Shown here: in pieces, positions 2,569 to 50,242 of the stretch
How positions within the stretch are numbered: position 1 is the first letter of the stretch
How the letters are laid out: each line of letters starts with the position of its first letter
Source: Cyanophora paradoxa CCMP329
Lineage: Eukaryota > Plantae > Glaucophyta
Direction of reading: 5' to 3'
DNA length: 64,000 nucleotides
Assembly (NCBI GenBank): GCA_004431415.1
Contig: QPMI01000429.1
Span: 62,001-126,000 of the forward strand
Notes under the pieces: model-generated
The model's input: the letters and a program-made list of their open reading frames with translations, nothing else
What the model was told of the DNA's origin: nothing
The model's database searches: none
Translations under genes and position numbers: made by a program

Positions 2569-5341
2569 CGCGCGAGGGCCCGCCGCCGGGAAGCCAGGCC
2601 GCTCCTGCAGCGAGCTAAATGCGCAAGCGCGTGACAGCTCTGAAAGTCCATTGCTGCTGGAACCAGACCCAGTTCCCGAATCCGTCGTACCCCGGCGCTG
2701 CGATCAAAACCACTTCCCGGCAGATGACGCGGCTCCCGCACTCACTCGAAGCCCGGAGACTCAGGCTACGTCCATTCCAGCGCAGATCATGCTCGTCCGC
2801 AACGCGCGATGCCATCGCAGCGGGCGCCCATGAGCATGTCAATGCCAGCTGCATGCGTCGGCGCAGGCCTAGGGAATCCGACCGTGCTTACCGAATGCGT
2901 GATGCAGGCCGCCAGCGCCTGCTCGCGCCGTATCTCCAGGGTTCAAGCGTTCGCCGTCTTCCTCGGGTGCCTCCTGGCCCGCGGTCGCTTGATTCCCGGC
3001 GCGTATTCTAACTTTCCACGCGCTATTACAGACCTATCACGCCTGCGAACGCCCCTGGTGTCTCGTCGGCGCTTCTTCACAGCAGAGCTTTCGACCTTGC
3101 GGTTCTAGGTGCGGCAAAGCACACGCCCGCGGCTCGCATGTAATCGCAGGCGGGTGGATGCTGACTTCTCCTGCGCTGCCACAGACCCTGCGGTCGTCGA
3201 CATCGACCTGCAGGACCTGCTGGCTGCCCCGGCCGAGTCGTGCGCATGCTCGAAACCAGCTAGCGCTGCAGCCGCCAGCTCTACAGCGGCACGTGTGCGC
3301 TTCATCGCGCGCTTCGTCCTCGCGGAGGCTGCCGGGGACGATGCCGAAGACGTCTTCGGTGCGCTGGCGGCGCGGGATCAAAAGTGCGCCCGTGAGCCGA
3401 CGCCGAGTGCGCAGAGCGCTGGAAGGAGGCGGAGGCGAAAGGATTCGATGGAGTGCTGCTCGCGGTCGTGGAGTCGGCCAAGTCGCCGAGCGCGGTGGCG
3501 GCCCTGCTGGAGCGGCTGGCAGAGCAGAAGCCCCTCGGCGAGCGCCCGCTGCTCTTCCTCGAGGACGGGCCGGCGGTCTTCCGGCAGCCAGCGGCCCGCG
3601 CGCTGCTTGCGGGCGTCCTCCTCACGGACCTCTGCATAAACCCCGACGGCTCGCCGCGGTGCGCGTCGCCCCGACCCCGATCCAGCGCCGACGGCGACTG
3701 CTGACTCCGGACCACCGGATCCTCGCAGGGTCTGGTACGGCGAGGCGTGGCGGAAGACACGGGAGTACCGCGACGAGGTAAGCTGCGCGGGGCGATCGCG
3801 AGGCGCAAGGGGCGCCGCTGACGGGGCCGGGCGGCAGCTGCTGGAGGAGATGCGGACGCGGGCGGGGTTCGTGGTGCTGGCGGTGGGCGTCGCGCCGAGC
3901 GAGCAGCACGCGCGGCCGGAGGTGGTGCGGCGCTTCGCGAACCTGACGAGCGAGTACCCCATCGCGGGCTACTTCTCGAGCGACCCGACCTTCAAGGACC
4001 TCGACGCCGTCCGCCCGCTGCGGCTCGGGCCCTCGCCGCTGGCCCTCCTCTCCTCGGACCCACAGGTCCGTCGCCTTTTGGCCGCATCGATATCGCGCGG
4101 GCCGCTCACGGGAAGCCGCGGCAGGTTCGGCGCTTGGACGCCGCGGGGGAGCGGGCGGGAGGCCTGCCGGGCGTCCCCGAGCATCTGCTCACGCGCGAGG
4201 AGGCGGGGGGGCCGGCGGCGGCCACCTCATGCCTCTCCGCGCCGATTGCCGAAGCCCTCGCCACCGCCGCCCATCGCCTCGCCGAGCGCCGTGCGTCCTG
4301 CCCTTCTTTCTCGGTGCTGGCGCGCAATGACGAGTGCGGCGCAGCGGAAGCGGAGCGGAAGTGGACGGCGTGGCTAGCGGAGAGCGCAGCGGCGCTCGAG
4401 GAGGCCGGCGCGGGTCGGGAGGCGGTCACCCTCCTGCATCAGGCGGCGGCCGCGGAGAGTGATGTCATGTCTGAGCTCGCGGGCAGCACGGACAACGATG
4501 CCCAGAGCGGCGTCGTGTCGACGACGCTGCAGCTTCCGGCGACGTGGACGGGGGATCCGGAGGACGCAGGCGCGAGCGACTGGGGCTGGAGCGGCGGGGC
4601 GGCGGCGATCGGGCAGTGGGAGCTCTGCTGCGGGGTGCCGAGCGAGGCGGCGATACGGCGAGTCATCGCTGTCCAGCGAGCCCTGCGCATCGGCGGCACG
4701 CTGCTGCAGATCTCCGCCCCTCGCGTTGCGGAGGTGAAGGCTTTCGTTTCCACTTTCGCGTCGCCCGCCATAACTGAGCCCGTCTGCAGGCCTTCGAGGG
4801 CGGGTGCGTGGCGTGGAAATGCACCGCGGTCACGCGGGAGCCGTTGACGCGCCGCAGGACGGAGAAGAACCCGCAGCGACCGCTGCTACAGCTAGAAATG
4901 CGGGAGGCGATCGCGTTGCTGGAGGCGGCGGCCGCAGATGCATCGCCCCACGCTCCACTGCTGGGGCCGTTCGCGGCCAGCGGCCCGCTCGCGGGGGCGG
5001 CGCCTTTCCGGCTGCTGCAGCGGGTGGTGGAGGCGCTGCGGAGGGGCGAGGGCCGTCCGGGGCCCACTGTCCACGTCTGGTCCTCGGGTGCGGCGCCTTT
5101 CGGTCTAAACGCGCATTTGCGATGACGTGGCTGGGCCAGACCACGTGAGCCTCGCGGTGGACACAGCGGAGGGCCCGCAGCGGTTCTTTGCCGTCGCGGA
5201 GATCGAGGCCGACCCGCCCGCCCTGCACGGTGCCCGTCCTTTCCAACGGCTTCTTCTGGCGCCGACATGATTAGTGGCGCAGTGTACGTGCGGCGGCCGC
5301 CGGAGCCGCATGCGCACCCAAACGTGGCGGAGGCGGTCCTC
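1..5341. repeat. Large inverted repeat: arms ~1-2155 and ~3183-5341 with a diverged ~1-kb centre
   Basis: Mirror ORF pairs sum to 5342 (495..1208/4134..4847; 965..1492/3850..4377; 1638..1889/3453..3704). Only scattered substitutions, plus small indels near the inner ends. Confidence 0.95.
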
Positions 5342-8300
5342 TTCTGCACGCTGCGCGCTGCTGGCTACCCGCCGGCGCAGGCGCGGCTGCTGGTGCGCTT
5401 GCATTTTCTGTTCTCTACTCACCCTTCTGCCGCTAACGGATGGGACAGAGCGCGATGGCGCGGCGGCCGTCGGGGAGGGACAAGGAGAGCGACGGCCGCG
5501 AGGCGGTGCCCCTGAGCGACACGACGCAGGCGGAGGTCCTCCTCGCTTCGCTACGAGAGCTCCAGGTATGAGACGGACCTGCTGTCATGATATTTCGCAG
5601 ATGCATGCCTGATCGGAGCGGTCTGCAGGCCTTGGTGCTGAGCTGCGCGCCGCGGGCGGAGGCGGTGGAGCGTGACGAGCGCCTGCCCCCCGAGGAGCGG
5701 ACGGCGCTCGCGTCGGTGGAGCGCTGCGTCCTGGCGGCCGCGCTCGCCCGACTGTCCTCGCACGGCCTTCGGAGCTCTGCGCGGGGCCGGGCCACGTGTG
5801 CACCCCGCCCGTCGATCTTGAAGCGCCGCTCACGCAGCGCAGCACGAAGGCGATTCGACAGGCCGAGGAGCGCGGGGCGGACGACCCGTGGCTGCAGTTG
5901 GTGCGGCGGTCGCTGTGGCAGCCCACGGTGATGGCGGAGACGCTGCGACCGCTGCTGGCTGCGCTCGCTGTCGGCTGCGACGTGTGCTGCAGTCCACCGG
6001 GCGCCGCCGCGCGGGATGTGATCGCAGCCCCGATCACCGCCCTCCGAGCATGGTGAGCGAGGTTTGTCGGAAAGCACGGAAACGCCTGCTGATCGAGCGC
6101 AGTGCATTCGACGAGCTGGAGGTGACGTGCCGGGACCGAGCCTTGACATCGCCCTGTCAGTGTTTCTTTTTGTTCCTAAAATTTGCATGCTGAATGTGCG
6201 TGCAGATTTCGTCAACGTTCCTGATGTGACAAGTGAGTTCCCTCTGTGCTCAGCCTTTTGCGCATTTCGAATCGGAAGTAATAGTGCTTATTTTTGCTCA
6301 GCAATCTACACGGAGTGGACGGGCCTGCGAAGCGAACAAGCTGAGCGTGTGTTCGGCCTGTCGAAGTACAAACTCTGCGAGACCCTCCTCCACGAGCGGG
6401 TGCGTGCAGATCTAGATGCCGTCATCCGAATCCCCATGCGGCTGTGAGCTGATTCTTTTTCACAGATTCGGAGCAAAATGGCGGCAGAGGATCCAGATCC
6501 CGAGTCAATCTGGCCGCCGCCGCCTCTTTCATCCACGCGTGAAGCCGCCGCAAAGTGGATCCGGAAATTCGCCGATGGACTATTCTTTCAGGTTTACTCC
6601 TTATCGTTTTCAAACCCACGAGCTTGAGAGGCTAGCGCTTACGGAACGCCACGCAGGTTCCACTTGTTCTCCAATTGGTGCTCTTTGCGGTGTGGGGCGT
6701 CGGACCATTTTCGTCGAGGGGACTCGATCCTTCCGTTTCTGTCGCTTTGACTGTGGCCCTCTACGTCGCTCTCATTTTATCGGCTGCGTCCAATCAGGCT
6801 CGTATTGTAGAGTGCACCTGATCGCTCTGCTCGCCGCTGAACTAACAGTTCAAAACAGGGCGTCTCCCTCTTCGTGTACTGCTACAAGTTTCAGGCCTCA
6901 TATTCCCTCATGAAGGCTTCCATCGCGCAGATGGCTCTGGTTCGCCCGCTTTTCTTCGTCTCGATCCACCTCGCACACCGACCGCCTCGCAGGCCTCCCT
7001 CGTCCTTTACGTCATCGGCGGGGGTGGAGCCGCCATTTCCATCTTCCGTGCCGTGCGCCTTTTCGATGTGCATATTTACATCCGATCTCGCATTTCGTAA
7101 GTTTCGTCGCAGTTCGATGACGGGCGGCTCGCGGCCGTCTTCTTTGTCTACGTGCTGCTGTTTGCTTTCCTTCTAGCGCTCACGGCAGTGCTCTACGCGC
7201 TGCATCCGACGGGATCTTCGGCTTGGAAGTCGGCCGAGGGACATGCGATAATTGCTGCCGTGCTCGCCGCCGTCCTCTGCTCTCTTCTTCTCGATTACAA
7301 CGTGCAGCACGGCGACGTCTGGCGCCGCGAGTACAACCACCTCGTCGCTTTGACTGTCGCCGACGCCCTTCTAGGCTTCTTCACCGCCGCGCAATTGCAG
7401 CACCACAACACCGCCTTCAACACCATTAAGCCCACCGCCGAGGCCGACGTGATTGCCGTGAGTTCTTTTCCACCTTGCATTTCCACAAATCTCACAGTAT
7501 CTGCAGTGGCACGCGCGGCGCATGGGTCAGCCCCCCGCGCCGCTCAAGTCAAGCAACGAGGCCGCTGACAACGCCGCCGTGCATTCTTCCCTACATTGCA
7601 TTCGCTCGTGGCTCCCATCTGAAATCGCATCGCAGTGTCTGGAGTGGTGGACGCGTGCGGAGGGGACGCTTCTCACTGCGGAGGTGGCGAAGGACAGCGA
7701 GGTGCTGGCGGCCGCTCGCAAGGCCAGGGACCGCTTCGTTGCCGACGCTCGGGTGCGCGCGGCATTCACGGTCATCAGCATAATCGGCAACTGCATGAAC
7801 GTTTGACGCGAACGTTCGGCAGTCGGAATTTTCGGCGGAGTGCACACAAGCGGCGCACCAGGGCAGATTCATGGGGCGCTGGTTTCCGTTTCTTGCCGGG
7901 CGGGTGACTTTCGATGAGGTATACGAAGCACATTCGTTTAAAGCATCCATTAATTCTCTAAACTTTTCTGACGCACGTGGCAGCTCGTGCTCCCTCGGGC
8001 GCGAAATTTGGACGCTGAAAGCGCTCTCGTGCAGTGGACGTCGGTGCACATGATCCATTGCAATCGATATCTCAAGTAACGCATGTAGCGCGCACGTGCC
8101 TAATTCGCTTTCAGGGGTTCACGATGAAGGCGGTCCCGCCCCCGTTCACGAGGGAGTGGGACGAGCTTCTGGGGGAAGGGGTCGCGGCCTTCTCGGTCAA
8201 GCGGCGCGTGGACACCCCGCATCGGGGCGGCGCCGCGTTCGACGCCGTCCTTCCGCACGCGATGGCCGGCGCGCTCTTCTTCGTCCTCCTCTTCTCCGAC

Positions 8301-11300
8301 CGACTCATCCGCTTCTCCTTCGCGCCCCTCGAGTACGCTTGTATCCCTCTCGTTTTCGTGCTTATGCTTGAACTCACATGTAAATCTGCGCCGTCAGGAT
8401 GACACGCACGACCCAATACGAGACCGCTCTTAATGTGGCTGTGCTGGTACTCGTCGCCTGCAGCTGCTCCATGGAGACCCTCTGGAGCCGCCTTCCTACT
8501 CTCGCTAGCTCCTGGCATAAGGTATTCGACCGATGGCCAATTGCAATGCATATATATGCACGCTAGCTGACTGTCACGCGTGAGCTGCGGGTCGGTCTGG
8601 AGGGTGTTACACCGCAGGCTGTAATGGCGCACGAGGAGCGACAGCGCAGCCGTCTTTTCGTCTCAGAAATAATCGTACGCTTCCAATCTTTTCGTAGCCT
8701 TCTTTCCGCTGACGCGCGCGCAGCGCCTTGGCGCTTTCTTCCTCGTGGCGGCAGGCCTGGGTGCAGCCTTGATTCAGTTCACGCAGGCACCAGTGTGCGT
8801 CAAGCACTCGCCCGCCAAACCCGCCCTCCCTCCCTTCCATTTATCAGCGAGCTGACAAATATTTTCCGATCAGTGGAGGGGTGTCATTGCGGGGCTGGGT
8901 GGTTTACAGCGTTGCCTGTGTCTCGTTCTTCGGTCTCGAGGTTCGCGGATATGCATATCGATTTCGATAAAAATTATGAAAGAAAAGCTAAAAGCGTATG
9001 CGTAAACTCTATTCCGTCTAGGTGATGTACTGCACCGAGATATTCTACCGTTGCTGCTGGATTCAGGTTCGCTCACGTCTCTGATCGAAAGGCATCGTTG
9101 TTACATCCTTTCGCAGTGGAAAGAGGAGCATTTGAAGAAGACGCTCGTGGCTTGGAGCTATGTCGTGGGCTGCTGCGTCGGTATTCCTACGGGCTGCATT
9201 GCTGGTTCGAAACGATTGCGAGCACTGAAGAAAAGCAGCGCGAGCTAACTGCCCGAACAGTGAAATTGACGGGCGACCTGGACTACGCCCTCTTGGCCCC
9301 CCTCGCTGGAGCCTGGGCGGGTGTCTTCTTCATCAAGGTCTCTCCGTCTGCGTACATTCTTTTCTACCTTCATATTGCTGATGTTTTGCTACAGCTGCTC
9401 CTGTACCTCGAGGGTGCGCACGGCTGGTTCGACGGCATCCCGCTCCTCTCCCGCCGGGCCGCCCGCTTCGACGACCCGGACCCGAAGGCGCGCCCGCCCC
9501 GCCCGAGACACCCCGCGTCGCCGGCGCTCACGGCGGTCGCGCAGGAGGCGGCGGAGGCGGAGCGGGGCGCTCGCTGCGTGGCGGTGCGGCTCGTCGGGCA
9601 GCCGTGCCCCGCCGCGCCGGAGGAGATCGGCGCCCTCGCCGCGCGCCTCGTGAGGGCCGGCCCGGGCTCCGGTGTCCGCGTTGTTTCCAGCGCCGTTCGC
9701 GCCGCCGCGTCCTTCCTGTGCGGGCTGGCATCGCGGCGCCTCGGGCGGGGCGGCTTCCACTCGGCGCTGCTGAGCGCCGTGCCGGCGGGGCCCGAGCTGC
9801 TCGCCGAGGCCCACGACGCCCTCGCCGATGGCGAGGGGCTTCAGGTGCGCACTGTTGCGGACTGACGTCGGGGATCTTCCGTTGATTTGGCGGCGGCCGC
9901 AGGTTTCTGTCGTGTCGGAAGCATTCGCCGCAGTCGACGGGTCGCATACACTCGTCAGCGGCCTCGCTGTGGCCGGCCGGTGCGCCACAATTCGATAAAG
10001 AGTTGTATATATATATTTCAAAACTGAACGACTCGCAGGTACCCGCTGGCGGCGCTGTACGTGCCTGGTGGCTGGTACCACCGCTCCTCGCCGGTGCGCC
10101 TCTGTCACAGTGGGCGGCAGCTCAGCTGTCGCCGACAGCTCAATGCAGGCGCGGCTGTTCGTGTCGGAGGCGGCGGTCGGGGAGCGCCCCGCTGCGGCGG
10201 CCGTGGCGGAGCTGATGCTGCACGCGCTCGACAAGGCGCGCCGGCGGGCCGACCCGGAGGCCGCCGCGTTCGGCCCGGCGGACGATGACGCGCCCGGCGG
10301 CACGGGCGCCACAGCCGCCGAGCTTCTGCTGAGCGAGCAGGATCCGCCGGCGCCGGACTACGTCCCCGCCCGCTTCCTGCCGCAGCTGCGGCGCTGCGAT
10401 GGCGGCGCACTGGCAGCGCTGGCGGCGCGGGCGCACTCCTCTGCAGCGGCGGCGGCGCTGGCGGGGGTCGACGTGGACCGGCGCTGGGCGGAGCTGCCGT
10501 GGGGCGCCCGCGCCGTCGCCCTCGCGTGCCTCGCGGGAGTGCCAGGCGGGCGGCCGCCGCCGCTGGGGGGCCGCCCTGCGCGCCGCCCTCGCGGAGCTGT
10601 ACGGCCGCCCGGTCGAGCCCGCCGCGTGGCGCGAGGCCTGCGGTGCGCTCTCCTCCATTCGTCTCCTGCGGAAAGGGGCTGAGGCGGATTCCGCAGAGCG
10701 GGGGCGGCTGCTGGCGCGCCTCGCGCACGCGATCGGGCGCGCGGCGCGGGAGGAGGCCGCAGCGAGGCCCGCCGAGGCGCCCGCGCTGGAGCTGCCGGAG
10801 CCGGAGGCCGCCCCGAAGCCCCTCGTGAGTTCACCATTCGTTTGTAATGCGTGCACTGTACCGACTCGGCTGCGCAGGGGGGCGGGCGGCTGGCGCCCGA
10901 GGAGCTGTACGTGCGGCTGCCGAGGGCGCCGGACTCGCTCGCGGCGCGGGCCCTGGAGCAGCTGCACGTGCGCGGTCCGCGCCACGCGCCTCGCCGGTTT
11001 GACGCCCGTGCAGCTCATCGCCCGCCTCTGGTTCCTCGCCATCACGGGCGACACATCGTTCCCCGCCGAGTCCGTGTTCTCGCTGCAGAAGTTTCGCTTC
11101 GTAGAGATGCTGAGCGCGGTCGCAGGTACGGCTACGCGCTGCACGGGCCGCGCGAGCCGGGGCCTGAAGCCGCTGTCCGCGCTGGCTGCCTCGCCTGGCC
11201 GCTCTACCCGTGCGCACTCGTGCTTTGCTTACGCATGTTTCGCACAATCATCATGGATGGAGCGGCAGGCTGGCGTCGCACCTGATGCTGCTGGTGCACG

Positions 11301-14300
11301 CGGCGGCCCGGCCCGTCGCGGAGGCCCTCTTCTGGGGCATCGCCATGGCACTCTCGCCGAAACTGCGGGCGCTGCAGCGCGCAATCGAGCACGGCATCTA
11401 CCGCCGCGAGCTCCGCCGCGACGGCCTCGTCGCCGCCGTCCAGTGCAACCTGTTCGACGTGCGCCTGCTGCCTGTCGTGCGCATCGGGCCTCACTCGCCA
11501 TACAGGGTCCGGTCACGGGCTTCGTGCGGCGGGCGCCCGACGAGGCGGGCCGCGTGCTTGCCGTCCACATCCTCCCGGGCCTCCTCGACGCGTACGGCCC
11601 GCCCTGCCGCCATGGCCAGCGCCGCCCTCCGCCGACGCGCCGCAGGGAGCCGAAGCGGACGTGTGTGGGCCACGTCGGGGTCGCCTCGGGCAAGGAGGGC
11701 GGCAAGGCTGCGCTCTCGCTGGCCGGCTGCGAGTGCGCCTTCGTGCGGGCCGAGTACGACGGCGACGGGCGCATCCGCCGCCGCCTGCAGTATCGCAGCA
11801 ACGCCGTCCAGTGGACCGCCTTCTACTCATATGACGGTTCCCGTGAGGCAAGCGCAACAATCTGCCTGCTTGCGTCCCCCCTGACCGCCCCGCAGGGATT
11901 CCCCGAGCACGTGCCAAGCGCCAAGCGCGTCTACCAGGGCGAGGTGCTCTCGAAACCGGATTGCTGAACCCGTTTCGTTCTTAAGATTCGTTCTTGCCGC
12001 CAGATGTTCGAGGAGCCGCTTCTGAAGGACGGAGAGCCGCGCCCAGCGGGACTGCTGCAGGCAAGTTGGTCGCACTCTTCGCTCGTTCGGCACTGATGCT
12101 GCTGCAGGAGCTGCGGTACGACGCGACGGGACGCGAGGCGGCGGCTGTGGTGTACGTGCGGCCGTCGTGGGACAAGAGCTCTCCGCAGCCCGTCTCGGCT
12201 TTCCACAGCTTTCCAAGCGATGATCCGCTGGCCGACTCGCACGCGGTGGCCGCCGAGTACGCCGGCGTGCCGCTCGGCCCGCGTCGCACGGGCGCCCTTT
12301 TCGTCGAGCTGTACCCCCACACCCTCCTCCTCAAGCAGGTCTGACGTCCCCAGTGTAGATATCCGGGCCCGCCCTTCTTACATCGGACGCAGGTCGAAGT
12401 GCGTGAGGAAGGGGTGCCAACCTTGCGGACGACGTACTTATGGGGCCACCCCAGCCACCCGCGCATCGCCACAGTGCGGCTGTATTATTGCGAGATCGTT
12501 CAAAATGCAAATTGCGTTTTCGCAGGTGAATGCAGACACAGGCGAGCCGTGTGTGACGCCGGAGCTGGTGAGAAGTCGTGCTATCACATGCTCGATCGAG
12601 AGGGCTTGGGAGCGAAATCTGTTCGCAGGTTGCGAAAGACACGCTCGGACTGATTGCGCGCCTCCGGCACGTCGCCTCCATCTATCAGGTCCATTAACTT
12701 TCGGATAGAGTCGGCGCGCGTTACTGACGCTCGCGGCAGGAGGATCTCCTTGCCCCGCTTCCAAGCTCGAGTGACCGAGAAGAGCCCGAGGAGCCGCCTC
12801 GGCGCTGGCGTCGCAATCCCCGTTCTCGGAGCGTCGCGTCGGGGGCGATGCCGACTGCGATGGCGCGAACCGCGCTCTGGCGCGCCTGGGCCGCGGTGCG
12901 ATGATACCTTCATTCAAAACGCCTTTCTGTCGCTGATTCGTGGTGCAGGGCGCTTTGGACGGAGCGCAGGCGCGGCAGTGGGACGAGGCGCTGCTGCGGG
13001 CAGAGCCGACGCTGCGGCGGTACTGGCGGCTGCGGGACTGGGGCCTGCTGGAGGCGGCCCGCGCGGAGCTGCGGGAGCGCGAATCGGACATCGTCGCTGC
13101 GATCGCGTTCAATAACGAGGCGTGACCGGCCGCACGCGCGTTTGGCAATTATTCTGACGCTGCGCAGGGCGTGCGGACGCTCATGGCCCTCCGTACATCG
13201 GACCTGTTCGACATGTGCCGCGGCGGCGCGTCGCAGCGGTGCGCTTCGTCGTTTCTGTCAGTGGCGTGCTCTGATGCGCCGCAGGTACTCGATCGCCGAG
13301 GCCGAGGCGCCGGCGGGGGCGGGGGCGGGGGCAGAGGGGGCCGACCCCGACGACCCGGCGCTCTTCGCGCGCTGGAACGAGGCCGCCCCGCTGCCCGTCA
13401 CGAACGTCGACACGGGCACCTGGCCCATGGACGGCGGCGTGCGTTTCTGTGCGCCCCGGATGCTTTTCTTCGGCGTCTGATCGCACATAATGCGCAGGGC
13501 GTGGCGGCGTGCCGGCGCGACCTCGTGGACACTCTCCCGCGTCTTCGGTGGGACGCCACAGTTGAGATTGGCAACGAGGCCCGCGGTCCGTACGCGTGAC
13601 CATCGCTAGCATTTATTCTTCGAACCGCCTGCACGGTTGTGAATGCCTGATCATGGGAGCCGTCCTTTAGTGCTTCCTCCGGGCTACAACGTGATGCGAA
13701 ACGTCCGCTCGCTTCACTTGACACCGCTCTGGCACATTTCGGGGGTGCGGTGCTCGCCGTTTCGGCGAGAATGCGCTCTCCTAACGCATCTGCGCGTGCT
13801 GCAGCTGCCGCAGGCGCAGCAGGCGGACCAGGAGATGGCTGCCGTCCCGTACGGTCTGCTGGCGGCGCGGCGCTGGAGGACTTCGCCGAACATCATTCGG
13901 CGCTTCTTCGTTCCGATCTTGCGCCGAGTGAGAGCTCTTTGATTTTGCTCCGCATTGAGCAGCGCGTTCAAGTCACGATTTTGCCCGTATACGTAGATGA
14001 TGGCGATCCAAGCGAACCGGCGCCCCACAAAGCGCGAGCTCGACATCGCGACCGTGGCGTACACCAACTTTGCGCTGTGTTCGTACAACTCGTTATCTTT
14101 TGCATATGCTGTCACTCGCCATCATGTTCTTGCAGATCTCCGAACGTACGATTTGAATGATACCGTCAGCAGCGCCGACGTTCGTGCAGCCTACACTCGC
14201 TTCTGGTGACTGTCTCTCTACATCGTGGTGCAGCTTATTTCCTCTAACGATTGGCGTTTCTGCAGGCTTGACGACGCACATCGCATCGCACAGAATGGCC

Positions 14301-17300
14301 CGTACGCCTGCATCGAGATGTGCACCCGTAAGCAATTTAGAATTGATGGCCATCATATTCTTCGAATTGCGTTCATTCTGTGCCACGGTCCACCATAGTG
14401 GATGAGGTGGAGGCGGCGTACGAATTCACACTCAACCACATGCTGAGGCCATGGGCCTCGGAACCCGTGCCCAACTGCGTAACCCACGCCTCTCATCACG
14501 GTCAGTCACGAGAGGCCGATTTTCCGCGGTCCTCTGCGCTCACGCGAAGCTCAGGCATCCAGGGCGCGCTCGGGCTGATTGCAAAGGTCCTCCACGGCTC
14601 GGGTTTCATCCAGTGGGACCGTGCGGCGCTCACTTCTTTCAGACACTCTCAGATGCATCGCTCATCCCGAAGCGCAGACTGCATTCTCTATCGGGAGTTT
14701 CTGCGCTACGCCAACGATGACAGGTCGATACCGCAAAATTATTGCAGCGAATGGGCTGCTTATCCGGTTCCCTTGCAGGAGCCATCGGCAGTGGGTGAAG
14801 TACGCGATCGGCTGTCTCTTCCGTGGGACAACGTTCATCAATTACCATGCAGCCGACACCGTGCGAAATTCGTTAGAAGAAAACTTCTCGTGGTGCCTGG
14901 CTCATGTCCCGCTCGCGATCAGATCGTTTCCTGCTGTGCAACGTTCAACAACGAGTGGGAGGTCAATGTTGGGGGCGGCCGCGGGCACGACGGGCGCACG
15001 GTGGCGATGCGGCGCAAGCTCTCGCCCGTCGTGAACGGGATGCTGATGGGCCGCTTCGCCCCGCGGCGCGAGTCCGAGCGCCCGCGTCCGACGGCAGTGA
15101 TGGTGCGCGAAACGTCGTCAGTTTGAGAACCGCTCGGTGCCGCCTCTGAACCTTGCGCAGCTGTCTCATGTTACCATCCTCAAGGACATCAAAACGGCCG
15201 TCCGCGCCGCAAAGGTGCGTTCGATGCCGATTTCCGTGACTCCCCCATGCCGACTGATTATAACTCGAATCGACTGCTACTTGTGTGGCAGGTGATCGTG
15301 GAGGAGTACGGCCTGCGCGAGTACCAGCTCCTCGTCTACGGCGACACCACCAAGGGTGCGAGGCGTGCGAAGCGTCGGGTCGCCTAGCGCTCTTCTCACA
15401 CTGCAACAGATCCCACGCACGCTGACGAGTGCCGAGCTTTCATTTTCGCGAATGGCCTGGAGACGAATGTTTTGCTCTGTGGCCTCGGCAACTCGCCCAT
15501 CGTGCTTCCCCGTGGCTGGTGAGTGGATGCTGCCCTCGCATTCGGGTCGCGTTCTCACGGCTCGGGCGCAGGCTGATGCTGAACTCGTCGCGCTCGGAGG
15601 GCCTGCCGCTCGCGCTGGGCGAGGCCGGCCTCTGCGGCCTCCCCGTCGTCTGCACGGACGGTGCGCCTGCAGCCGCCCGGCGCCGCGCCAAAGGGCCGAC
15701 GCCGCCGGCCGGGGCAGTGGCGGGGTCGAAGGAGATCATCCAAGTGCCGGAGGACCCGTCGCGCGTCTTCGGAGCCCTCGTGCCGCCCGTCGACCACGCC
15801 GCCCTCGCCCGCGCGCAGCTCGAGGTCCCGCCCCACCGCCCGCCGCCCGCCGCCCGCCCGCCCGGCGCTGACCGGGGGCAGGTCTTCTGCATGACGGGGT
15901 ACCTGCCGGAGCTGGCGGGCGAGCCGCGGCCGGGCCCCTCGCTCGACGCGCTGCTGCGGGGCGGCCCCGGCGCGCTGCGGGCGCGGATGGCGGAGGCGAA
16001 GCTCCTGCGGCAGCGCCTCGGCATGCGCTACCGCGCCAACGTCGCCGCCTCCTTCGGCCTCGTGCGCCCGCACCCCCGCCCCGCTGCGCCGCGCCCGCCG
16101 ACCCGCCGCAGGACCGGTACAAGCGGGAGCACGAGCAGCAGATCTGGGCGTGGGCGGTCCGCCACCGCGAGCTGCAGGCCCGCGCCGTCGCCCTCGCCGC
16201 GCGGCCGGCCGGCGCCGCGGCGGCCCCGCTGCGGGCCCCGGCGCCCTTCTTCGCGGCGGCGCTCGCGTCGGTCGTGGCGCAGTGGCCGCGCACCATCGAC
16301 CTGCCGCGCCCGCCGCCCGTCGACTCCCGCCCGGCCCCCGGCGACCCGCCGCTCGCCCCGCCCCGCGCCCTCGCCATCCTCGCCGCCCGCCCGACGGCGC
16401 CGGACCTCCTCGCGCCGCTGTGGGAGGACGAGCGGCGCGCCGGTGAGGCCGCCGCCCCTGCCCCCGGCCGCCTCCTCGACCTCTACCTCTGCCCGACCGC
16501 CGCGGAGCCCGCGGGGCGGGCGGTGAGCGAGCGCCTGCTGGCGATCCGGCGCGCCCCGAGTCTCCCGCCGCCCAGCCCCGGCCTTGTGCCGCCAAGCCCG
16601 AGCGACGTGGTCAAGAGCGCGCGGCTGCTGTCGGCGGGCTCGCTGCGGCGGCGCGCTCCGGCGTGGCGGCCGCCGCGGCTGCCGGGCGAGCGGCCCGTGC
16701 CGCTCCTGTGGGAGCTCACGGTCGAGTCGCCCGCGCCCGAGCCCGAGCCCGAGGCGCCCCCGCCTCTGCCCGCTCCGGAGCCGCTGCCGGAGCCGCTGCC
16801 GGAGCCGCTGCCAGAGGCGGAGCCGGAGCCCGAGCATCAGCCGCAGCCGGAGCCGGAGCCGGAGCCAGAGCTCCGGGAGGTCGAGGCTGCGGGCGAGCAG
16901 GAGCCGAAGCAAGAGCCTCAGCCGGAGCAGCTGGGGGCGGGGACGTTGGAGGTGGCGCCTTCCGTGCCGCCGTCCGAGCCGCCGGTCGCGCCGGCGGCGC
17001 CGGTGGCGCCGGAGGAGGAGGACCGGCTGCCGGCGTGCGAGGAGGACCCGCCGGCCCTCGACATCGAGCCGCTTGCCGCGCCCGAGCGCGTGCTGCCGCG
17101 CCTGTGGGAGTACCCGGAGGACGAGCCGGGCCAGTCGGCGGCCCTGAGCTTCCCGCCCCGGCGCCTGCCGTACCTGTGGGGGTACCCCGAACTCGAGGAG
17201 GGCCCGGCCCCGCCCCCCGTCTTCCCCCTCCGCGACATCCCGTACCTCTGGGACTACCCCCTCGAGGACGGCTTCCCACGGCCCCCGCCCGCCCGCCCGA

Positions 17301-18693
17301 GGCCCGCCGCGCAGGCGCCGGCCGCGGCAGCTGCAGCCGCCGCCCAGCCGCCGGCGGCGGCAAGCGATACGACCGGCCGGGAAGGTCCAGCGGCGCCAGT
17401 GGAGGGGCCGCCCGCCGCGGCCCCGCCACCGGTCTCCGACTCCGCCGCGGCTCCGGCTCCGCCCGTTGCGGAGCCGCCTGCGCCGGCGGTGGCCGGCGCT
17501 CCGGAGGCTCAAGTTAAGGAGCAGCCTCCAGCTGCCCTCCCGTCGTCGCCGGCCCCGCCCCTGGAAGCTCCTGCGGCCAGCGCGGCCGCTGTCCCCTCGG
17601 AGCCTCCCCCGCCGCCTCCGCCGCGGGCCGCCCCTCCGCCCTACCGCTCCTCGGGCTTCTCGTCGGCCGCCACCCGCCGCTGGCAGCCGCCGGCGCCGCT
17701 CCAGCCCCAGCCCCGCCCCACGCGGCCGGCGTCGCAGCCGCCCCGCCCCGCGCGGCCGGCGGTGCAGCAGCCGCTGCTGCGGACGGGGGCGCAGCCGCCA
17801 CACAAACCTTCCGCAGCGAGCAGCGTGGGCCCCTCCGCCCCGGCGCCGGCGCCGGTCGCCGCGGGCCCGTCGGGGGTGAAGAGCTACGGGGGACGGCCGC
17901 CGCTGGCGGGGGCGTGGCTCGAGGCGGAAGGGTCGAGGGCGCCGGCGCGGGAGCCGCCGCGGCGGCGCGTCTCGCCGGCCATCGCCCAGCGCCTCGGGGC
18001 TTCGAGGGCGAGGCCGGCCCCCGCCCCGGCGCCGCCTCCGCCCCGCCCCGCGTCCGCGCCAGCGGCCCCCGGGCCGAGGCGGCAGCGGCCGCCGCGGGGC
18101 AGCGCGAGCGGCCGTCGCCGCGCGGCGCGGCGGACTCCGCGGGAGGGCCGGAGGGCCTGCTGGAGGCGGCCGGCGGGTCGGAGGGCCCCGCGGAGGCGGC
18201 TGGCGCCAGTGGCGGGCCGCCGGGCCCGGCGGAGGCGGCCGGCGGGCGGGAGGGAGCGGCGGAGGCACCCGACGCGTGCAGACGCGCATCAGCACCAAGT
18301 GCAAGCAGGACTATGGAGGACGCGTGCGATCTGGCGAAGGCCGGCAGCAGGGTCGCCCAGGCCCCGGCTGAAGAGTCGACTGGCGGGCCGGAGCGCCCAG
18401 CAGAGGCTGGAGGCGACGTCTCCGCAGCGGCGGGGAAGGGCCGTCGCGAAAAGATCGGAAAGTTACCGGCGCCGCTGCAAAATATGCAGCTGCAAGCCGG
18501 CGCGCACGCTTCTAAGTCTCTCGCACTGCTCGCAAGCATTCGGGGCCCACGGCCCGTCCCTGGAGAGATGCCGGCTCTTGACGAGGACGACGCTACGGCT
18601 CTTGCTGCCGTTCCCGCGGCCACCGCAGCTCCTCAGCAGGGCCGCTCTGCCGCGGCTGTTGTCGGACTGTTCTTCGGCAGCGCTCCGATGTAA
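2809..18693 (+). CDS. Giant multi-exon GT4 (PelF/DUF3492-like) glycosyltransferase, fungal Gtb3-like galactosaminogalactan-synthase architecture
   Basis: Spliced translation gives FAVFLG...FDLAVLDP, KGFDGVLLA (3441), hydrophobic TM exons (~6650-11350), WDEALLRAEPTLRRYWRLRDWG (12979), DTGTWPMDGG|GVAACRRDLVDTL (13409), LSHVTILKDIKTAVRAAK, YQLLVYGD, NSSRSEGLPLALGEA (GT-B E-X7-E, 15597-15623), LPVVCTD and RYKREHEQQIW (~16115), then a Pro/Glu-rich tail. Exact start and end are approximate, and there are a few apparent frameshifts in GC runs. Confidence 0.8.

Positions 18694-18826: not shown

Positions 18827-18891
<65 letters not shown>
18822..18891 (+). repeat. (GT)n microsatellite followed by a poly-G tract
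   Basis: Directly visible: gtgtgt... then ~33 G. Confidence 0.95.
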
Positions 18892-19385
18892 CGTGCGCGT
18901 GCGGGGCTTCCGATCGCGAACGTACGTTAGCTAGTACTAGGACATGATCATCATCGCATATGAAAGATGAAACAGGTTTTCGGTTATCATGCATATGCAT
19001 AGTCGGTGGTAGGCGCGGTCACCGGGTGGTAGGTTAAACGTTGGTCATGATCACGAGAATTCAAAATTTACTATATATATATATGAACCAGTTTTGATTT
19101 TAGAAAACCGTTGATCATTGTAATTAAGTGCTGACCACCTTGCCTGTACACGCCCCCACAGTGCTGGAGTAGACTAGAGGCTGTGGCCGGTAATTCACCA
19201 AAAAAAAAAATTGTAATTAAGTTTGGTACTACGGTATTCATATTAATAATATTAAGAAATTCAACCAGTTGCATTGAGTTCGAACAGACTCTCAGAGTCT
19301 GAGATGAAGTTTGTTACCCTCATCCCCTCCGCCGTGGGGCCGAGTTTCGACGTACGAGAGTCGACGATCGATATCGCAACAGCGA

Positions 19386-33509: not shown

Positions 33510-34745
33510 ATGGCGTTCTACTACAGCTACGAGCCCGTCTATGAGCCCGTCTTCACTGCTCCGATCTACGCCCCCGCCAGCGACTTCGGGCAGGTGCGCT
33601 AGCGCTGCAGCGTTGCGCGTCAGTACGCCTCCTCGCTCCTGACCCGGCCGTGCGCGGCGCAGCTCCGACGGGACGTGGACATGATCTTCGACTCGGTGCT
33701 GCGCCCCGACAACTTGCTCCTCCTCCGCGACCCGTGCGCACGCTCTCGAATGTTCCGCCTCGCCCGGCGGCCGCCGCTCATGATCACGCCGCCCGCGCGC
33801 AGGCTCCTTGAGACGCGGGGCCTTTGGTCGCGGCTGAACTCGCTCCTCGACTCGTACGATGACGACGAGATGGTCTCCGTGTCAAAGCGGCCGCGGCAGT
33901 CGATGCGCGTGGAGGCCGCGCCGCGCTCGCACCGGCGCCCCGCCGCACGTGCCGCCGCCGTTGGCGAGCAGGCCCAGCGCGCCGTCCAGGTGGCGCCCGC
34001 CGCCCCGGCCCAGCCGCAGTCTCCGGCCCCGCCGCAGGCCAGCGGCCAGCCGGAGGCCCAGCAGCAGGCGGCCGCCGCCGCTCAGGAGGTGCAGCAGGCG
34101 CAGCCGCAGCCGCAGGCGCAGCACGCCCGGCGGGAGTCGCGCGGCGAGGCCGGCCCGCTGGCGACCTCGCGCCTGTGGCGGGCGGCGATGCTGGAGCCGC
34201 GCGTGGACGTGCTGGAGAACACGGGCGCGTTCGTCGTGCGCGCAGAGGTGCCCGGCATCGCGCCCGAGGACATCAAGCTCGAGGTGCGCCATACCCCCCC
34301 GGAGTCCCGCTCTCCCCGCGAGACGTCCTTTGACGGCGCCGGGCGCAGGTGGCGGGCAATGTGCTCACGCTGTCGGGCGAGCTGCACCGCGAGGAGTCGA
34401 GCGGCGAGCGCGAGCGCGTGCACCGCCAGGAGCGCGTCTTCGGCTGCTTCTCGCGCCAGTTCCGGTGCGCCTCCCTCGCGGTTTGCGGAGCGCCCTCGCG
34501 GCCGCTGACACGTCTCGCGCAGGTTCCCCGGGCTGCAGTCGGTGAGCCCGCAGGAGATCAGCGCGGAGTTCGAGCACGGCGTGCTCACGATCAAGGTGCC
34601 GAAGCCCAAATCGGAGGTGCCGGTCGCCATCCCCGTCCGCATCGCCGGCGGCGCGGCGGCGGCGGAGAAGGCGCCGGTGGCGGCCGTCGCGGCGGCGCCT
34701 GCGCCGGCGGCGGTGGAGGCCGCGCCCGCGAGCCAGGCGGCTTAA
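33510..34745 (+). CDS. HSP20: Small heat-shock protein (HSP20/alpha-crystallin domain), copy A
   Basis: PRVDVLENTGAFVVRAEVPGIAPEDIKLE|VAGNVLTLSGE...HRQERVFGCFSRQFR|FP...ISAEFEHGVLTIKVPK...IPV; four introns. Confidence 0.93.
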
Positions 34746-49008: not shown

Positions 49009-50242
49009 ATGGCGTTCTACTACAGCTACGAGCCCGTCTATGAGCCCGTCTTCACTGCTCCGATCTACGCCCCCGCCAGCGACTTCGGGCAGGTGCGCTA
49101 GCGCTGCAGCGTTGCGCGTCAGTACGCCTCCTCCCTCCGCTGACCCGGCCGTGCGCCGCGCAGCTCCGACGGGACGTGGACATGATCTTCGACTCGGTGC
49201 TGCGGCCCGACAACTTGCTCCTCCTCCGCGACCCGTGCGCACGCTCTCGAATGTTCCGCCTCGCCCGGCGGCCGCCGCTCATGATCACGCCGCCCGCGCG
49301 CAGGCTCCTTGAAACGCGGGGCCTTTGGTCGCGGCTGAATTCGCTCCTGGACTCGTACGATGACGACGAGATGGTCTCCGTGTCAAAGCGGCCGCGGCAG
49401 TCGATGCGCGTGGAGGCCGCGCCGCGCTCGCACCGGCGCCCCGCCGCACGTGCCGCCGCCGTTGGCGAGCAGGCTCAGCGCGCCGTCCAGGCGGCGCCCG
49501 CCTCCCCGGCCCAGCCGCAGTCTCCGGCCCGCCGCAGGCCAGCGCCCAGCCGGAGGCCCAGCAGCAGGCGGCCGCCGCCGCTCAGGAGGTGCAGCAGGCG
49601 CAGCCGCAGCCGCAGCCGCAGCACGCCCGGCGGGAGTCGCGCGGCGAGGCCGGCCCGCTGGCGACCTCGCGCCTGTGGCGGGCGGCGATGCTGGAGCCGC
49701 GCGTGGACGTGCTGGAGAACACTGGCGCGTTCGTCGTGCGCGCAGAAGTGCCCGGCATCGCGCCCGAAGACATCAAGCTCGAGGTGCGCCCCGCTCCCCC
49801 GGAGTCCCGCTCTCCCCGCGAGACGTCCTCTGACGGCGCCGGGCGCAGGCGGCGGGCAACGTGCTCACGCTGTCGGGCGAGCTGCACCGCGAGGAGTCGA
49901 GCGGCGAGCGCGAGCGCGTGCACCGCCAGGAGCGCGTCTTCGGATGCTTCTCGCGCCAGTTCCGGTGCGCCTCTCTCGCGGTTTGCGGAGCGCCTTCGCG
50001 GCCGCTGACCCGTCTCGCGCAGGTTCCCCGGGCTGCAGTCGGTGAGCCCGCAGGAGATCAGCGCGGAGTTCGAGAACGGCGTGCTCACGATCAAGGTGCC
50101 GAAGCCCAAGTCGGAGGTGCCGGTCGCCATCCCCGTCCGCATCGCCGGCGGCGCGGCGGCGGAGAAGGCGCCGGTGGCGGCCGTCGCGGCGGCGCCTGCG
50201 CCGGCGCCGGTGGAGGCCGCGCCCGCGAGCCAGGCGGCTTAA
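49009..50242 (+). CDS. HSP20: Small heat-shock protein, copy B (apparent 1-nt deletion near 49530)
   Basis: Same exon structure as copy A; SAEFENGVLTIKVPK. One C is missing from the CCCC run, shifting the frame (assembly error or pseudogenisation). Confidence 0.85.

Follow-up and report, generated by a model that had tools for sequence, protein, structure and literature searches.

A candidate single-chain exopolysaccharide synthase of the Gtb3 family in the glaucophyte Cyanophora paradoxa

Introduction

Does a glaucophyte alga possess the kind of giant membrane-bound glycosyltransferase (GT) that is encoded at the galactosaminogalactan (GAG) locus of filamentous ascomycetes, and, if so, what could it make and where could it have come from? 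This question is raised by a 64,000-nt stretch of Cyanophora paradoxa CCMP329 DNA (assembly GCA_004431415.1, contig QPMI01000429.1, positions 62,001–126,000 of the forward strand), called the window below and numbered from its first base, in which one intron-rich gene occupies positions 2809–18693 of the plus strand. A preliminary description made from the letters of the window had placed at 2809–16300 an approximately 16-kb gene for a fungal Gtb3-type synthase related to bacterial PelF. In the present study, the gene was found to be, very probably, an intact and expressed member of the Gtb3 synthase family, which would be organized as a single-chain machine of the Pel/GAG-like kind.

GAG is the sticky, galactosamine-based biofilm polysaccharide of Aspergillus. 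Gtb3 is a protein of approximately 300 kDa that has never been modelled owing to its size (2023 review, PMC9860509), and the GAG cluster has been reported only from Pezizomycotina and, by transfer, from the basidiomycete Trichosporon, its origin being left open (2016 survey, PMC4817252). In the freely searchable literature (subscription journals lying outside it), no paper was found that joins Cyanophora with GAG, Gtb3, PelF or DUF3492, and none that attributes a MOP-like or a GH114-like domain to Gtb3.

Results

The gene is spliced, expressed and intact

The window gene, whose GC content is 58–81% along its length, comprises approximately 70–75 exons and encodes a protein of approximately 3,800 residues of the multi-pass membrane type. 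Approximately 70 exon high-scoring segment pairs (HSPs) obtained by ungapped tblastn are collinear with the protein of the C. paradoxa paralog tig00020604_g11844 (g11844 hereafter) and contain no stop codons. The ATG at 2809 is a plausible start, since the open reading frame (ORF) 2809–3108 aligns with g11844 residues 33–68 at approximately 43% identity. The stop codon follows position 18690, and a Pro/Ala-rich tail extends past 16300. The single intron-rich gene and the start of the preliminary description were thereby retained, and its end was moved from 16300 to 18693.

The stretch is present in ten public sequencing runs of one organism label. The fraction of its words that is present was approximately 0.42 in seven of these runs, as for spliced RNA, and approximately 0.72 in two, as for DNA; the DNA- and RNA-type runs in which it occurs came from three sources under the same label. 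Contigs of the runs X1–X3, which belong to two studies, showed GT..AG joints with introns of 50–85 nt, and contigs of the DNA run X8 were unspliced through 13503–14946. In the catalytic part, spliced transcript contigs of the two studies gave 18 consecutive GT-AG exons, and spliced RNA was also found over the middle region of the gene, at 10406–10824 and 11646–12894. RNA contigs from X1 and X3 cover 12948–13117, and the next intron (13120–13167, 48 nt) is of the GC-AG type amid otherwise GT-AG introns; the protein sequence of g11844 and an RNA contig that ends at 13117 both support it. This intron and three hidden junctions were resolved by reading the sequence, and the frames were checked by arithmetic.

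The exons of the GT domain start at 13285, 13498, 13671, 13805, 13997, 14136, 14266, 14399, 14555, 14678, 14779, 14923, 15161, 15292, 15410, 15572, 15718, 15882 and 16112. The first 18 of them (13285–16061) sum to 1732 nt. Since this length equals 577 whole codons and one further base that completes a split codon, the frame continues without a break into the exon starting at 16112. The gene is expressed, intact and spliced, the transcript evidence coming from 10401–16400.

A PelF-like GT4 domain with all family-invariant residues

Two exons, 12949–13119 and 13168–13238 (+), which are 95–96% identical to g11844, precede the GT domain, and the first of them carries RYWRLRDWG at 13018–13044 (+). 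The domain itself, a PelF-like GT4 module composed of a DUF3492 half and a GT1 half, is spread over the 19 exons at 13285–16147 (+). It contains DTGTWPMDGG at 13409–13438 and, across a 59-nt intron, GVAACRRDLV at 13498–13527, then LSHVTILKDIK at 15161–15193, EGLPLALGEA at 15597–15626, VVCTD at 15645–15659 and RYKREHEQQIW at 16115–16147. All six motifs listed in the preliminary description were found in exons of the plus strand and in the order given there.

Across 21 aligned GT-core sequences, 53 residues are invariant and all 53 are kept in the window exons, among them the E-x7-E of SEGLPLALGE, the Lys of KDIK and the histidine of WDH, whose codon is split by the intron 14621–14677 (14620|14678) with the residue remaining intact. 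Per-exon Pfam and NCBIfam scans were nearly empty because the exons are too short, a weak match of Pfam Glyco_trans_1_4 to a window exon ORF being their sole result; the paralog proteins are matched by Pfam DUF3492 and GT1.

Relation to Gtb3 and to PelF

The family was assigned through a stop-free ORF, 14347–15123, which reads through several in-frame exons, and through the natural paralog proteins that it retrieved. A search of 1.84 billion representative proteins with this ORF gave 39 matches, many of them 2,400–3,800 residues long and matched near the C-terminus, and a second search added proteins of Pezizomycotina, including the 2893-residue Aspergillus fumigatus protein P0089. The gene of P0089 adjoins a GH114 gene and a gene for a 793-residue protein whose relatives are assigned to the Agd3 Pfam families and annotated as CE18; these neighbours stand in the published ega3-agd3-gtb3 order, which identifies P0089 as Gtb3. 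In BLASTP, g11844 matched P0089 with 32% identity over 808 residues (E 2e-99), in an alignment that starts approximately 230 residues before the GT core and contains every motif of the preliminary description, and with 21% identity over 729 residues (E 3e-13) in the membrane region. The proposed resemblance to Gtb3 therefore extends beyond the GT-B fold. Within the GT core, the Cyanophora sequences are 33–35% identical to Gtb3, and the A. fumigatus counterpart of RYWRLRDWG reads YWRSRDRG. The family alignment of 17 full-length sequences is collinear and occupied from residue 1 to approximately 3005.

The suggested link to PelF was borne out as kinship. The NCBIfam PelF model (NF038011) was the best one for four diverse members, with 77–95 bits against less than 50 bits for the next GT4 model; the g11844 GT region scored 82.9, A. 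fumigatus Gtb3 76.6 and the Creolimax protein 94.5 bits, PelF leading the other models by over 35 bits. A tblastn search of 72,556 plasmids (7.3 Gb) with the g11844 GT region gave seven matches, six to pelF and one to a DUF3492 gene; several of them sit in pel operons, and match H1 covers residues 4–495 of 566. No bacterial PelF was returned by a homologue search with the 566-residue GT part, where the sensitivity of the word index is limited, and a scan of bacterial genomes gave no true PelF. Judged from these model scores and matches, PelF is the closest bacterial kin of the eukaryotic family, whose members are not PelF equivalogs.

A predicted MOP-fold membrane domain and N-terminal barrel

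By hydropathy, transmembrane helices lie at about 6650–9400, as the preliminary description had anticipated, in two bundles of approximately six helices each (approximately 12–13 in total) separated by a soluble insert of approximately 140 residues. The corresponding membrane domain is encoded at 6654–9400 (+) by exons 38–93% identical to g11844. An AlphaFold2 model of g11844 residues 880–1510, built with 17 aligned homologues, reached a mean predicted local distance difference test score (pLDDT) of 78.8 and a predicted template modelling score of 0.76. All of the top 30 PDB matches found for it with Foldseek belong to the MOP superfamily, and VIA gave Z scores of 22.9 for MATE1, 20.5 for WzxE and 17.8 for MurJ in alignments of approximately 380–417 residues that span the whole MATE, WzxE and MurJ chains. 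On this model, the fold of the membrane domain is that of the MOP superfamily (MATE/Wzx/MurJ).

The barrel-like N-terminal region noted earlier was modelled as a (beta/alpha)8 barrel, which opens the model of g11844 residues 60–880 (pLDDT 69 overall, 80–90 in the first 250 residues). Its exons lie at 3163–4113 (+) and are 57–98% identical to g11844 residues 69–321 by ungapped tblastn. The rest of the N-terminal region, likewise predicted to be cytosolic and made up of alpha/beta and helical subdomains, follows at 4122–6594 (+) as stop-free HSPs collinear with g11844 residues 305–905. In Foldseek, the barrel was matched best by GH191, PelA-H, GH114 and Ega3 (E 2.5e-4 to 2e-2), ahead of generic barrels; the VIA Z scores were 16.3 for GH191, 15.8 for the PelA hydrolase, 14.1 for GH114 and 13.5 for Ega3, other barrels reaching at most 12 and generic ones approximately 10. 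The barrel profile aligned by hhalign with the N-terminal domain of Azonexus PelA (Prob 69%, E 4.6e-5, 159 columns) and had no match to Ega3 or in Pfam. As modelled, the barrel has its closest structural relatives among the alpha-galactosaminidases PelA-H (GH166), GH114 and GH191. A glutamate conserved in 11 of 14 non-Cyanophora members aligns with the Glu of the PelA 'IEY' motif and is, from this alignment, a putative equivalent of PelA E218.

Homologues that begin with an N-terminal anchor helix have Arg or Lys after it. MOP proteins usually have both termini on the inner side of the membrane. Taken together, the basic residues (positive-inside rule) and this topology predict that both the barrel and the GT domain are cytosolic.

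Between the membrane and GT domains, a conserved middle region of approximately 820 residues, also predicted to be cytosolic, is encoded at 9401–12895 (+) and is collinear with g11844 residues 1510–2330 and with all family members. It had no Pfam match, the PDB sequence search returned designed helical repeats only, and the ESM Atlas search gave no usable match. The GT domain is followed at 16148–18693 (+) by a Pro/Ala/Glu-rich C-terminal tail of approximately 850 residues (P 24%, A 19%). Its frame is open from 16112 and shifts before 17998, which implies at least one intron. The tail matches the paralog protein P0001 at 3217–3433 (80%) and 3584–3808 (48%), contains LW-x-YP three times at 17102–17260 (LWEYP, LWGYP, LWDYP), and is common to the Cyanophora paralogs only, the other homologues being without it (alignment occupancy below 0.25).

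Paralogs and distribution of the family

The window gene is one of at least four C. paradoxa paralogs, three of which are adjacent; the members retrieved were tig00020604_g11843 (g11843; 3814 residues), g11844 (3865 residues), tig00001073_g6815 and tig00000459_g1153. In tblastn, window positions 3163–18678 match both g11843 and g11844 in collinear order. Identity to g11844 is mosaic, being 99–100% at 4122–5228, 9542–10641 and 15573–16186 and 40–80% at 6298–8943 and 13498–15369, which marks the window gene as a distinct paralog. The range of 38–100% among exons along the two genes suggests patchy gene conversion.

Outside Cyanophora, members were found in Fabomonas tropica, Creolimax, Ichthyophonus, Corallochytrium and many chytrids and Neocallimastigomycota, in addition to the Pezizomycotina. 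The distribution of these sequences shows that the Gtb3 family is not confined to fungi and also includes a glaucophyte, Ancyromonadida and Holozoa, so that the 'fungal' type of the preliminary description was right as to the family and too narrow as to its range. The DUF3492 giants of chytrids, Neocallimastigomycota, Ichthyosporea, Corallochytrium and Fabomonas share family and architecture with the Cyanophora proteins and, at 36–42% identity in the GT region, are nearer to them than the Pezizomycotina proteins are.

Two further family members were observed. The eukaryotic Logan protein P0065 (5216 residues, 65-kb contig) combines the family sequence with an Agd3-type PF25115 domain and with EGF, DSL and filamin domains. 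Whether it represents a natural fusion of synthase and deacetylase or a merger of neighbouring gene models, it links Gtb3-like with Agd3-like genes outside Pezizomycotina. Contig SUTP01000071.1 (9.6 kb), labelled as a metagenome-assembled genome of Methanosphaera stadtmanae, carries at 7645–9297 a eukaryote-type Gtb3-like GT region (36% identity over residues 8–561), which was the top match of the bacterial genome scan; this contig is probably a mis-binned one of an anaerobic gut fungus.

Phylogeny

For 36 eukaryotic GT regions, with four PelF sequences serving as the root, a tree was inferred with IQ-TREE under LG+C20 in a quick search. The eukaryotic sequences were split from PelF with a support of 100 in the Shimodaira–Hasegawa-like approximate likelihood-ratio test (SH-aLRT), and chytrids and holozoans formed one clade (SH-aLRT 100), with Cyanophora outside it. 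Cyanophora, on a branch of 1.24 substitutions per site, and Pezizomycotina are separate long branches from an unresolved base. In the approximately unbiased (AU) test, a clade of Cyanophora with the chytrids was rejected (p-AU 0.006, for a group chosen after the tree had been seen), and one of Cyanophora with Pezizomycotina was not (p-AU 0.30). Pezizomycotina Gtb3 did not group with the chytrid homologues, a placement in which long-branch effects are possible.

Going by this tree, a recent origin of the Cyanophora gene from chytrids is excluded. As to old transfer and deep ancestry, both of which the preliminary description had allowed for, the sequence data fit either.

Neighbouring sequences

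The 5' part of g11844 lies head-to-head with the window gene at 1–2568 (−) and continues beyond position 1. Residues 1–50, 51–75 and 76–125 of g11844 match the minus strand at 2568–2003 with 100% identity, with the ATG at 2568; this identity of its first exons establishes g11844 as the neighbour and the window as C. paradoxa DNA, in agreement with the glaucophyte source guessed earlier. The 240 bp between the two start codons (2569–2808) are probably a bidirectional promoter, as the divergent ATGs at 2568 (−) and 2809 (+) would imply. An inverted repeat of 2077 nt (99%; 1–2077 against 3265–5341) is common to both genes. Their first exons have diverged, including the putative exon 1 of the window gene at 2809–3040 (+), which encodes the diverged N-terminus and whose end coordinate is approximate.

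Just 3' of the stop codon, at 18840–18900, a (GT)n microsatellite is followed by a G-run. Two 300-nt blocks at 33639–34327 and 49140–49827, 97–98% identical and exactly 15.5 kb apart, suggest a tandem segmental duplication in the window's right half. The long ORFs elsewhere in the window had no Pfam match.

Discussion

The Cyanophora protein shares the giant layout of Gtb3 (Afu3g07860; Neurospora crassa NCU05132), in which an N-terminal region, a membrane domain and a long linker precede a C-terminal DUF3492-type GT4 domain, and it shares with it the motifs YWR.RD.G, DTGTWP..GGGV.ACRRD, WDH, KDIKTA, SEGLPLALGEA..PVVCTDV and RY.REHEQ.W. It differs in lacking the N-terminal anchor helix of the fungal Gtb3 proteins and in having a glycine in place of the conserved barrel glutamate and an additional Pro/Ala-rich tail of approximately 850 residues. 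The gene is interrupted by approximately 70 introns, belongs to a set of several paralogs, stands on a long branch of its own in the tree and, unlike the Gtb3 locus, is not part of a uge3-sph3-ega3-agd3 cluster. Such clustering is a mark of the Pezizomycotina locus and not of the protein family. Note that a search with A. fumigatus Agd3 listed fungal orthologues only; it bears out the naming of the Gtb3 neighbour and carries no information on Cyanophora.

The comparison with the bacterial Pel complex can be made module by module. Among bacterial GT4 models, that of PelF is nearest to the Cyanophora GT domain, and the hydrolase domain of PelA resembles the N-terminal barrel (the Z score of 15.8 and E value of 4.6e-5 given above). 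In Cyanophora, these modules are joined in a single polypeptide, whereas the Pel complex is made of separate proteins (PelF, PelG and PelD/E; PelA). PelA is a periplasmic protein; for the Cyanophora barrel, a cytosolic location is predicted. No cyclic di-GMP receptor module was recognized in the Cyanophora protein, and hhalign comparisons of the whole family with PelG, PelE and PelD were not significant. PelG is a member of what we take to be the same MOP superfamily, and its likeness to the Cyanophora membrane domain rests on that assignment.

These comparisons suggest a mechanism in which the PelF-like retaining GT4 domain, working at the cytosolic face of the membrane, would build an alpha-linked chain from a UDP-hexosamine, the likeliest donor being UDP-N-acetylgalactosamine, with or without UDP-galactose. 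Transfer of the chain across the membrane would fall to the MOP domain of the same polypeptide, and the barrel would bind the chain rather than cut it, so that the protein would be the single-chain counterpart of a PelF and PelG set with a PelA-H-like component, and its product a Pel/GAG-like exopolymer. We propose tentatively, with less confidence than we place in the family assignment, that synthesis of Pel/GAG-type cationic hexosamine polymers is an old, scattered eukaryotic trait based on a single-chain machine and that Cyanophora makes such a polymer.

Several points weigh against the interpretation as a single Gtb3-family gene with a Pel/GAG-like product. The structure models were made from the paralog g11844, with only 16–17 aligned sequences, and not from the window protein; the membrane domain had no Pfam match in any of 17 members; and hhalign of this domain with three PelG proteins, although collinear, gave P 0.032 and a probability of 1.6%. 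None of the tested members reaches the PelF equivalog cut-off of 100 bits. The conserved barrel glutamate is Gly in g11843, in g11844 and in the window (VLAVGVAP, 3874–3897), and the Cyanophora barrel, having lost this residue, probably only binds. As to the single gene, transcript contigs were compared with 10401–16400, and no contig spans the membrane and GT parts, the contigs breaking at GC-rich repeats near 13300. Neither an Ega3 nor an Agd3 homologue is present in the 64-kb window, and even for Gtb3 the donor specificity is unproven (PMC9860509).

Some of these points also favour a different product of the same machine, and a Gtb3-family synthase making another polymer, for example an alpha-glycan based on N-acetylglucosamine, glucose or galactose, is to our mind unlikely, but is to be taken seriously. 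It would agree with the long Cyanophora branch, with GT-core identity to Gtb3 of only 33–35%, with the glycine in the barrel and with the window being free of a partner hydrolase or deacetylase; it is harder to reconcile with the retention of all 53 family-invariant GT residues and with a barrel whose nearest structural relatives are exclusively alpha-galactosaminidase families. The origin of the gene is a separate matter. Horizontal transfer to Cyanophora from a fungus or another eukaryote, in place of descent from an early eukaryote, is a genuine possibility that we nevertheless rather doubt. The family has a patchy occurrence, with a single glaucophyte and a single ancyromonad beside some Holozoa and many Fungi, and the tree tolerates a grouping of Cyanophora with Pezizomycotina (p-AU 0.30); but Cyanophora falls outside the well-supported chytrid and holozoan clade (SH-aLRT 100), its union with the chytrids is rejected (p-AU 0.006), and the approximately 70 short introns of host style, host-like GC content, several diverged paralogs and lineage-specific tail mean that any transfer would have to be old.

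The remaining alternatives question the locus itself. That the window copy is a redundant paralog or one in decay, or that it is an assembly artefact of the palindrome, with only g11843 and g11844 being functional, could be suspected from the 99% inverted repeat at its 5' end and from the mosaic exon identity of 38–100% to g11844, but is very improbable, given that spliced contigs match the window at 99–100% where g11843 and g11844 differ from it (13498–13585 being only 86% identical to g11844), that the exon HSPs have no in-frame stops, that the invariant residues are intact and that the DNA run X8 covers the locus independently. Contamination of the algal assembly by fungal or other foreign DNA, to which the fungal origin of most named homologues might point, can practically be set aside: the GC content of 58–81% and the introns of 50–85 nt are those of the rest of the window, three sources, all under one organism label, supplied the DNA- and RNA-type runs in which the stretch occurs, the neighbouring gene exactly matches a C. 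paradoxa EukProt model, and Cyanophora is not nested in any fungal clade. The argument of the preliminary description that many host-style introns speak against contamination has thus held, with GC content and neighbouring gene in agreement.

Read as an intact, expressed member of the Gtb3 family, the glaucophyte gene, together with its ancyromonad, ichthyosporean, Corallochytrium and chytrid relatives, widens the range of the family and offers non-pathogenic systems for studying it, and the grouping of the chytrid homologues with holozoans bears on the origin of the fungal GAG cluster. The combination of barrel, MOP domain and PelF-type GT4 domain, an insight that applies to the whole family, provides a concrete hypothesis for polymerisation and export, a step still unexplained in both the GAG and Pel systems. 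If true, it would offer a tractable view of how a GT-B enzyme and a MOP-fold exporter are coupled when no lipid carrier takes part. The proposal also predicts an undescribed hexosamine-rich extracellular polymer in Cyanophora, which would, if confirmed, be the first such polymer in Archaeplastida.

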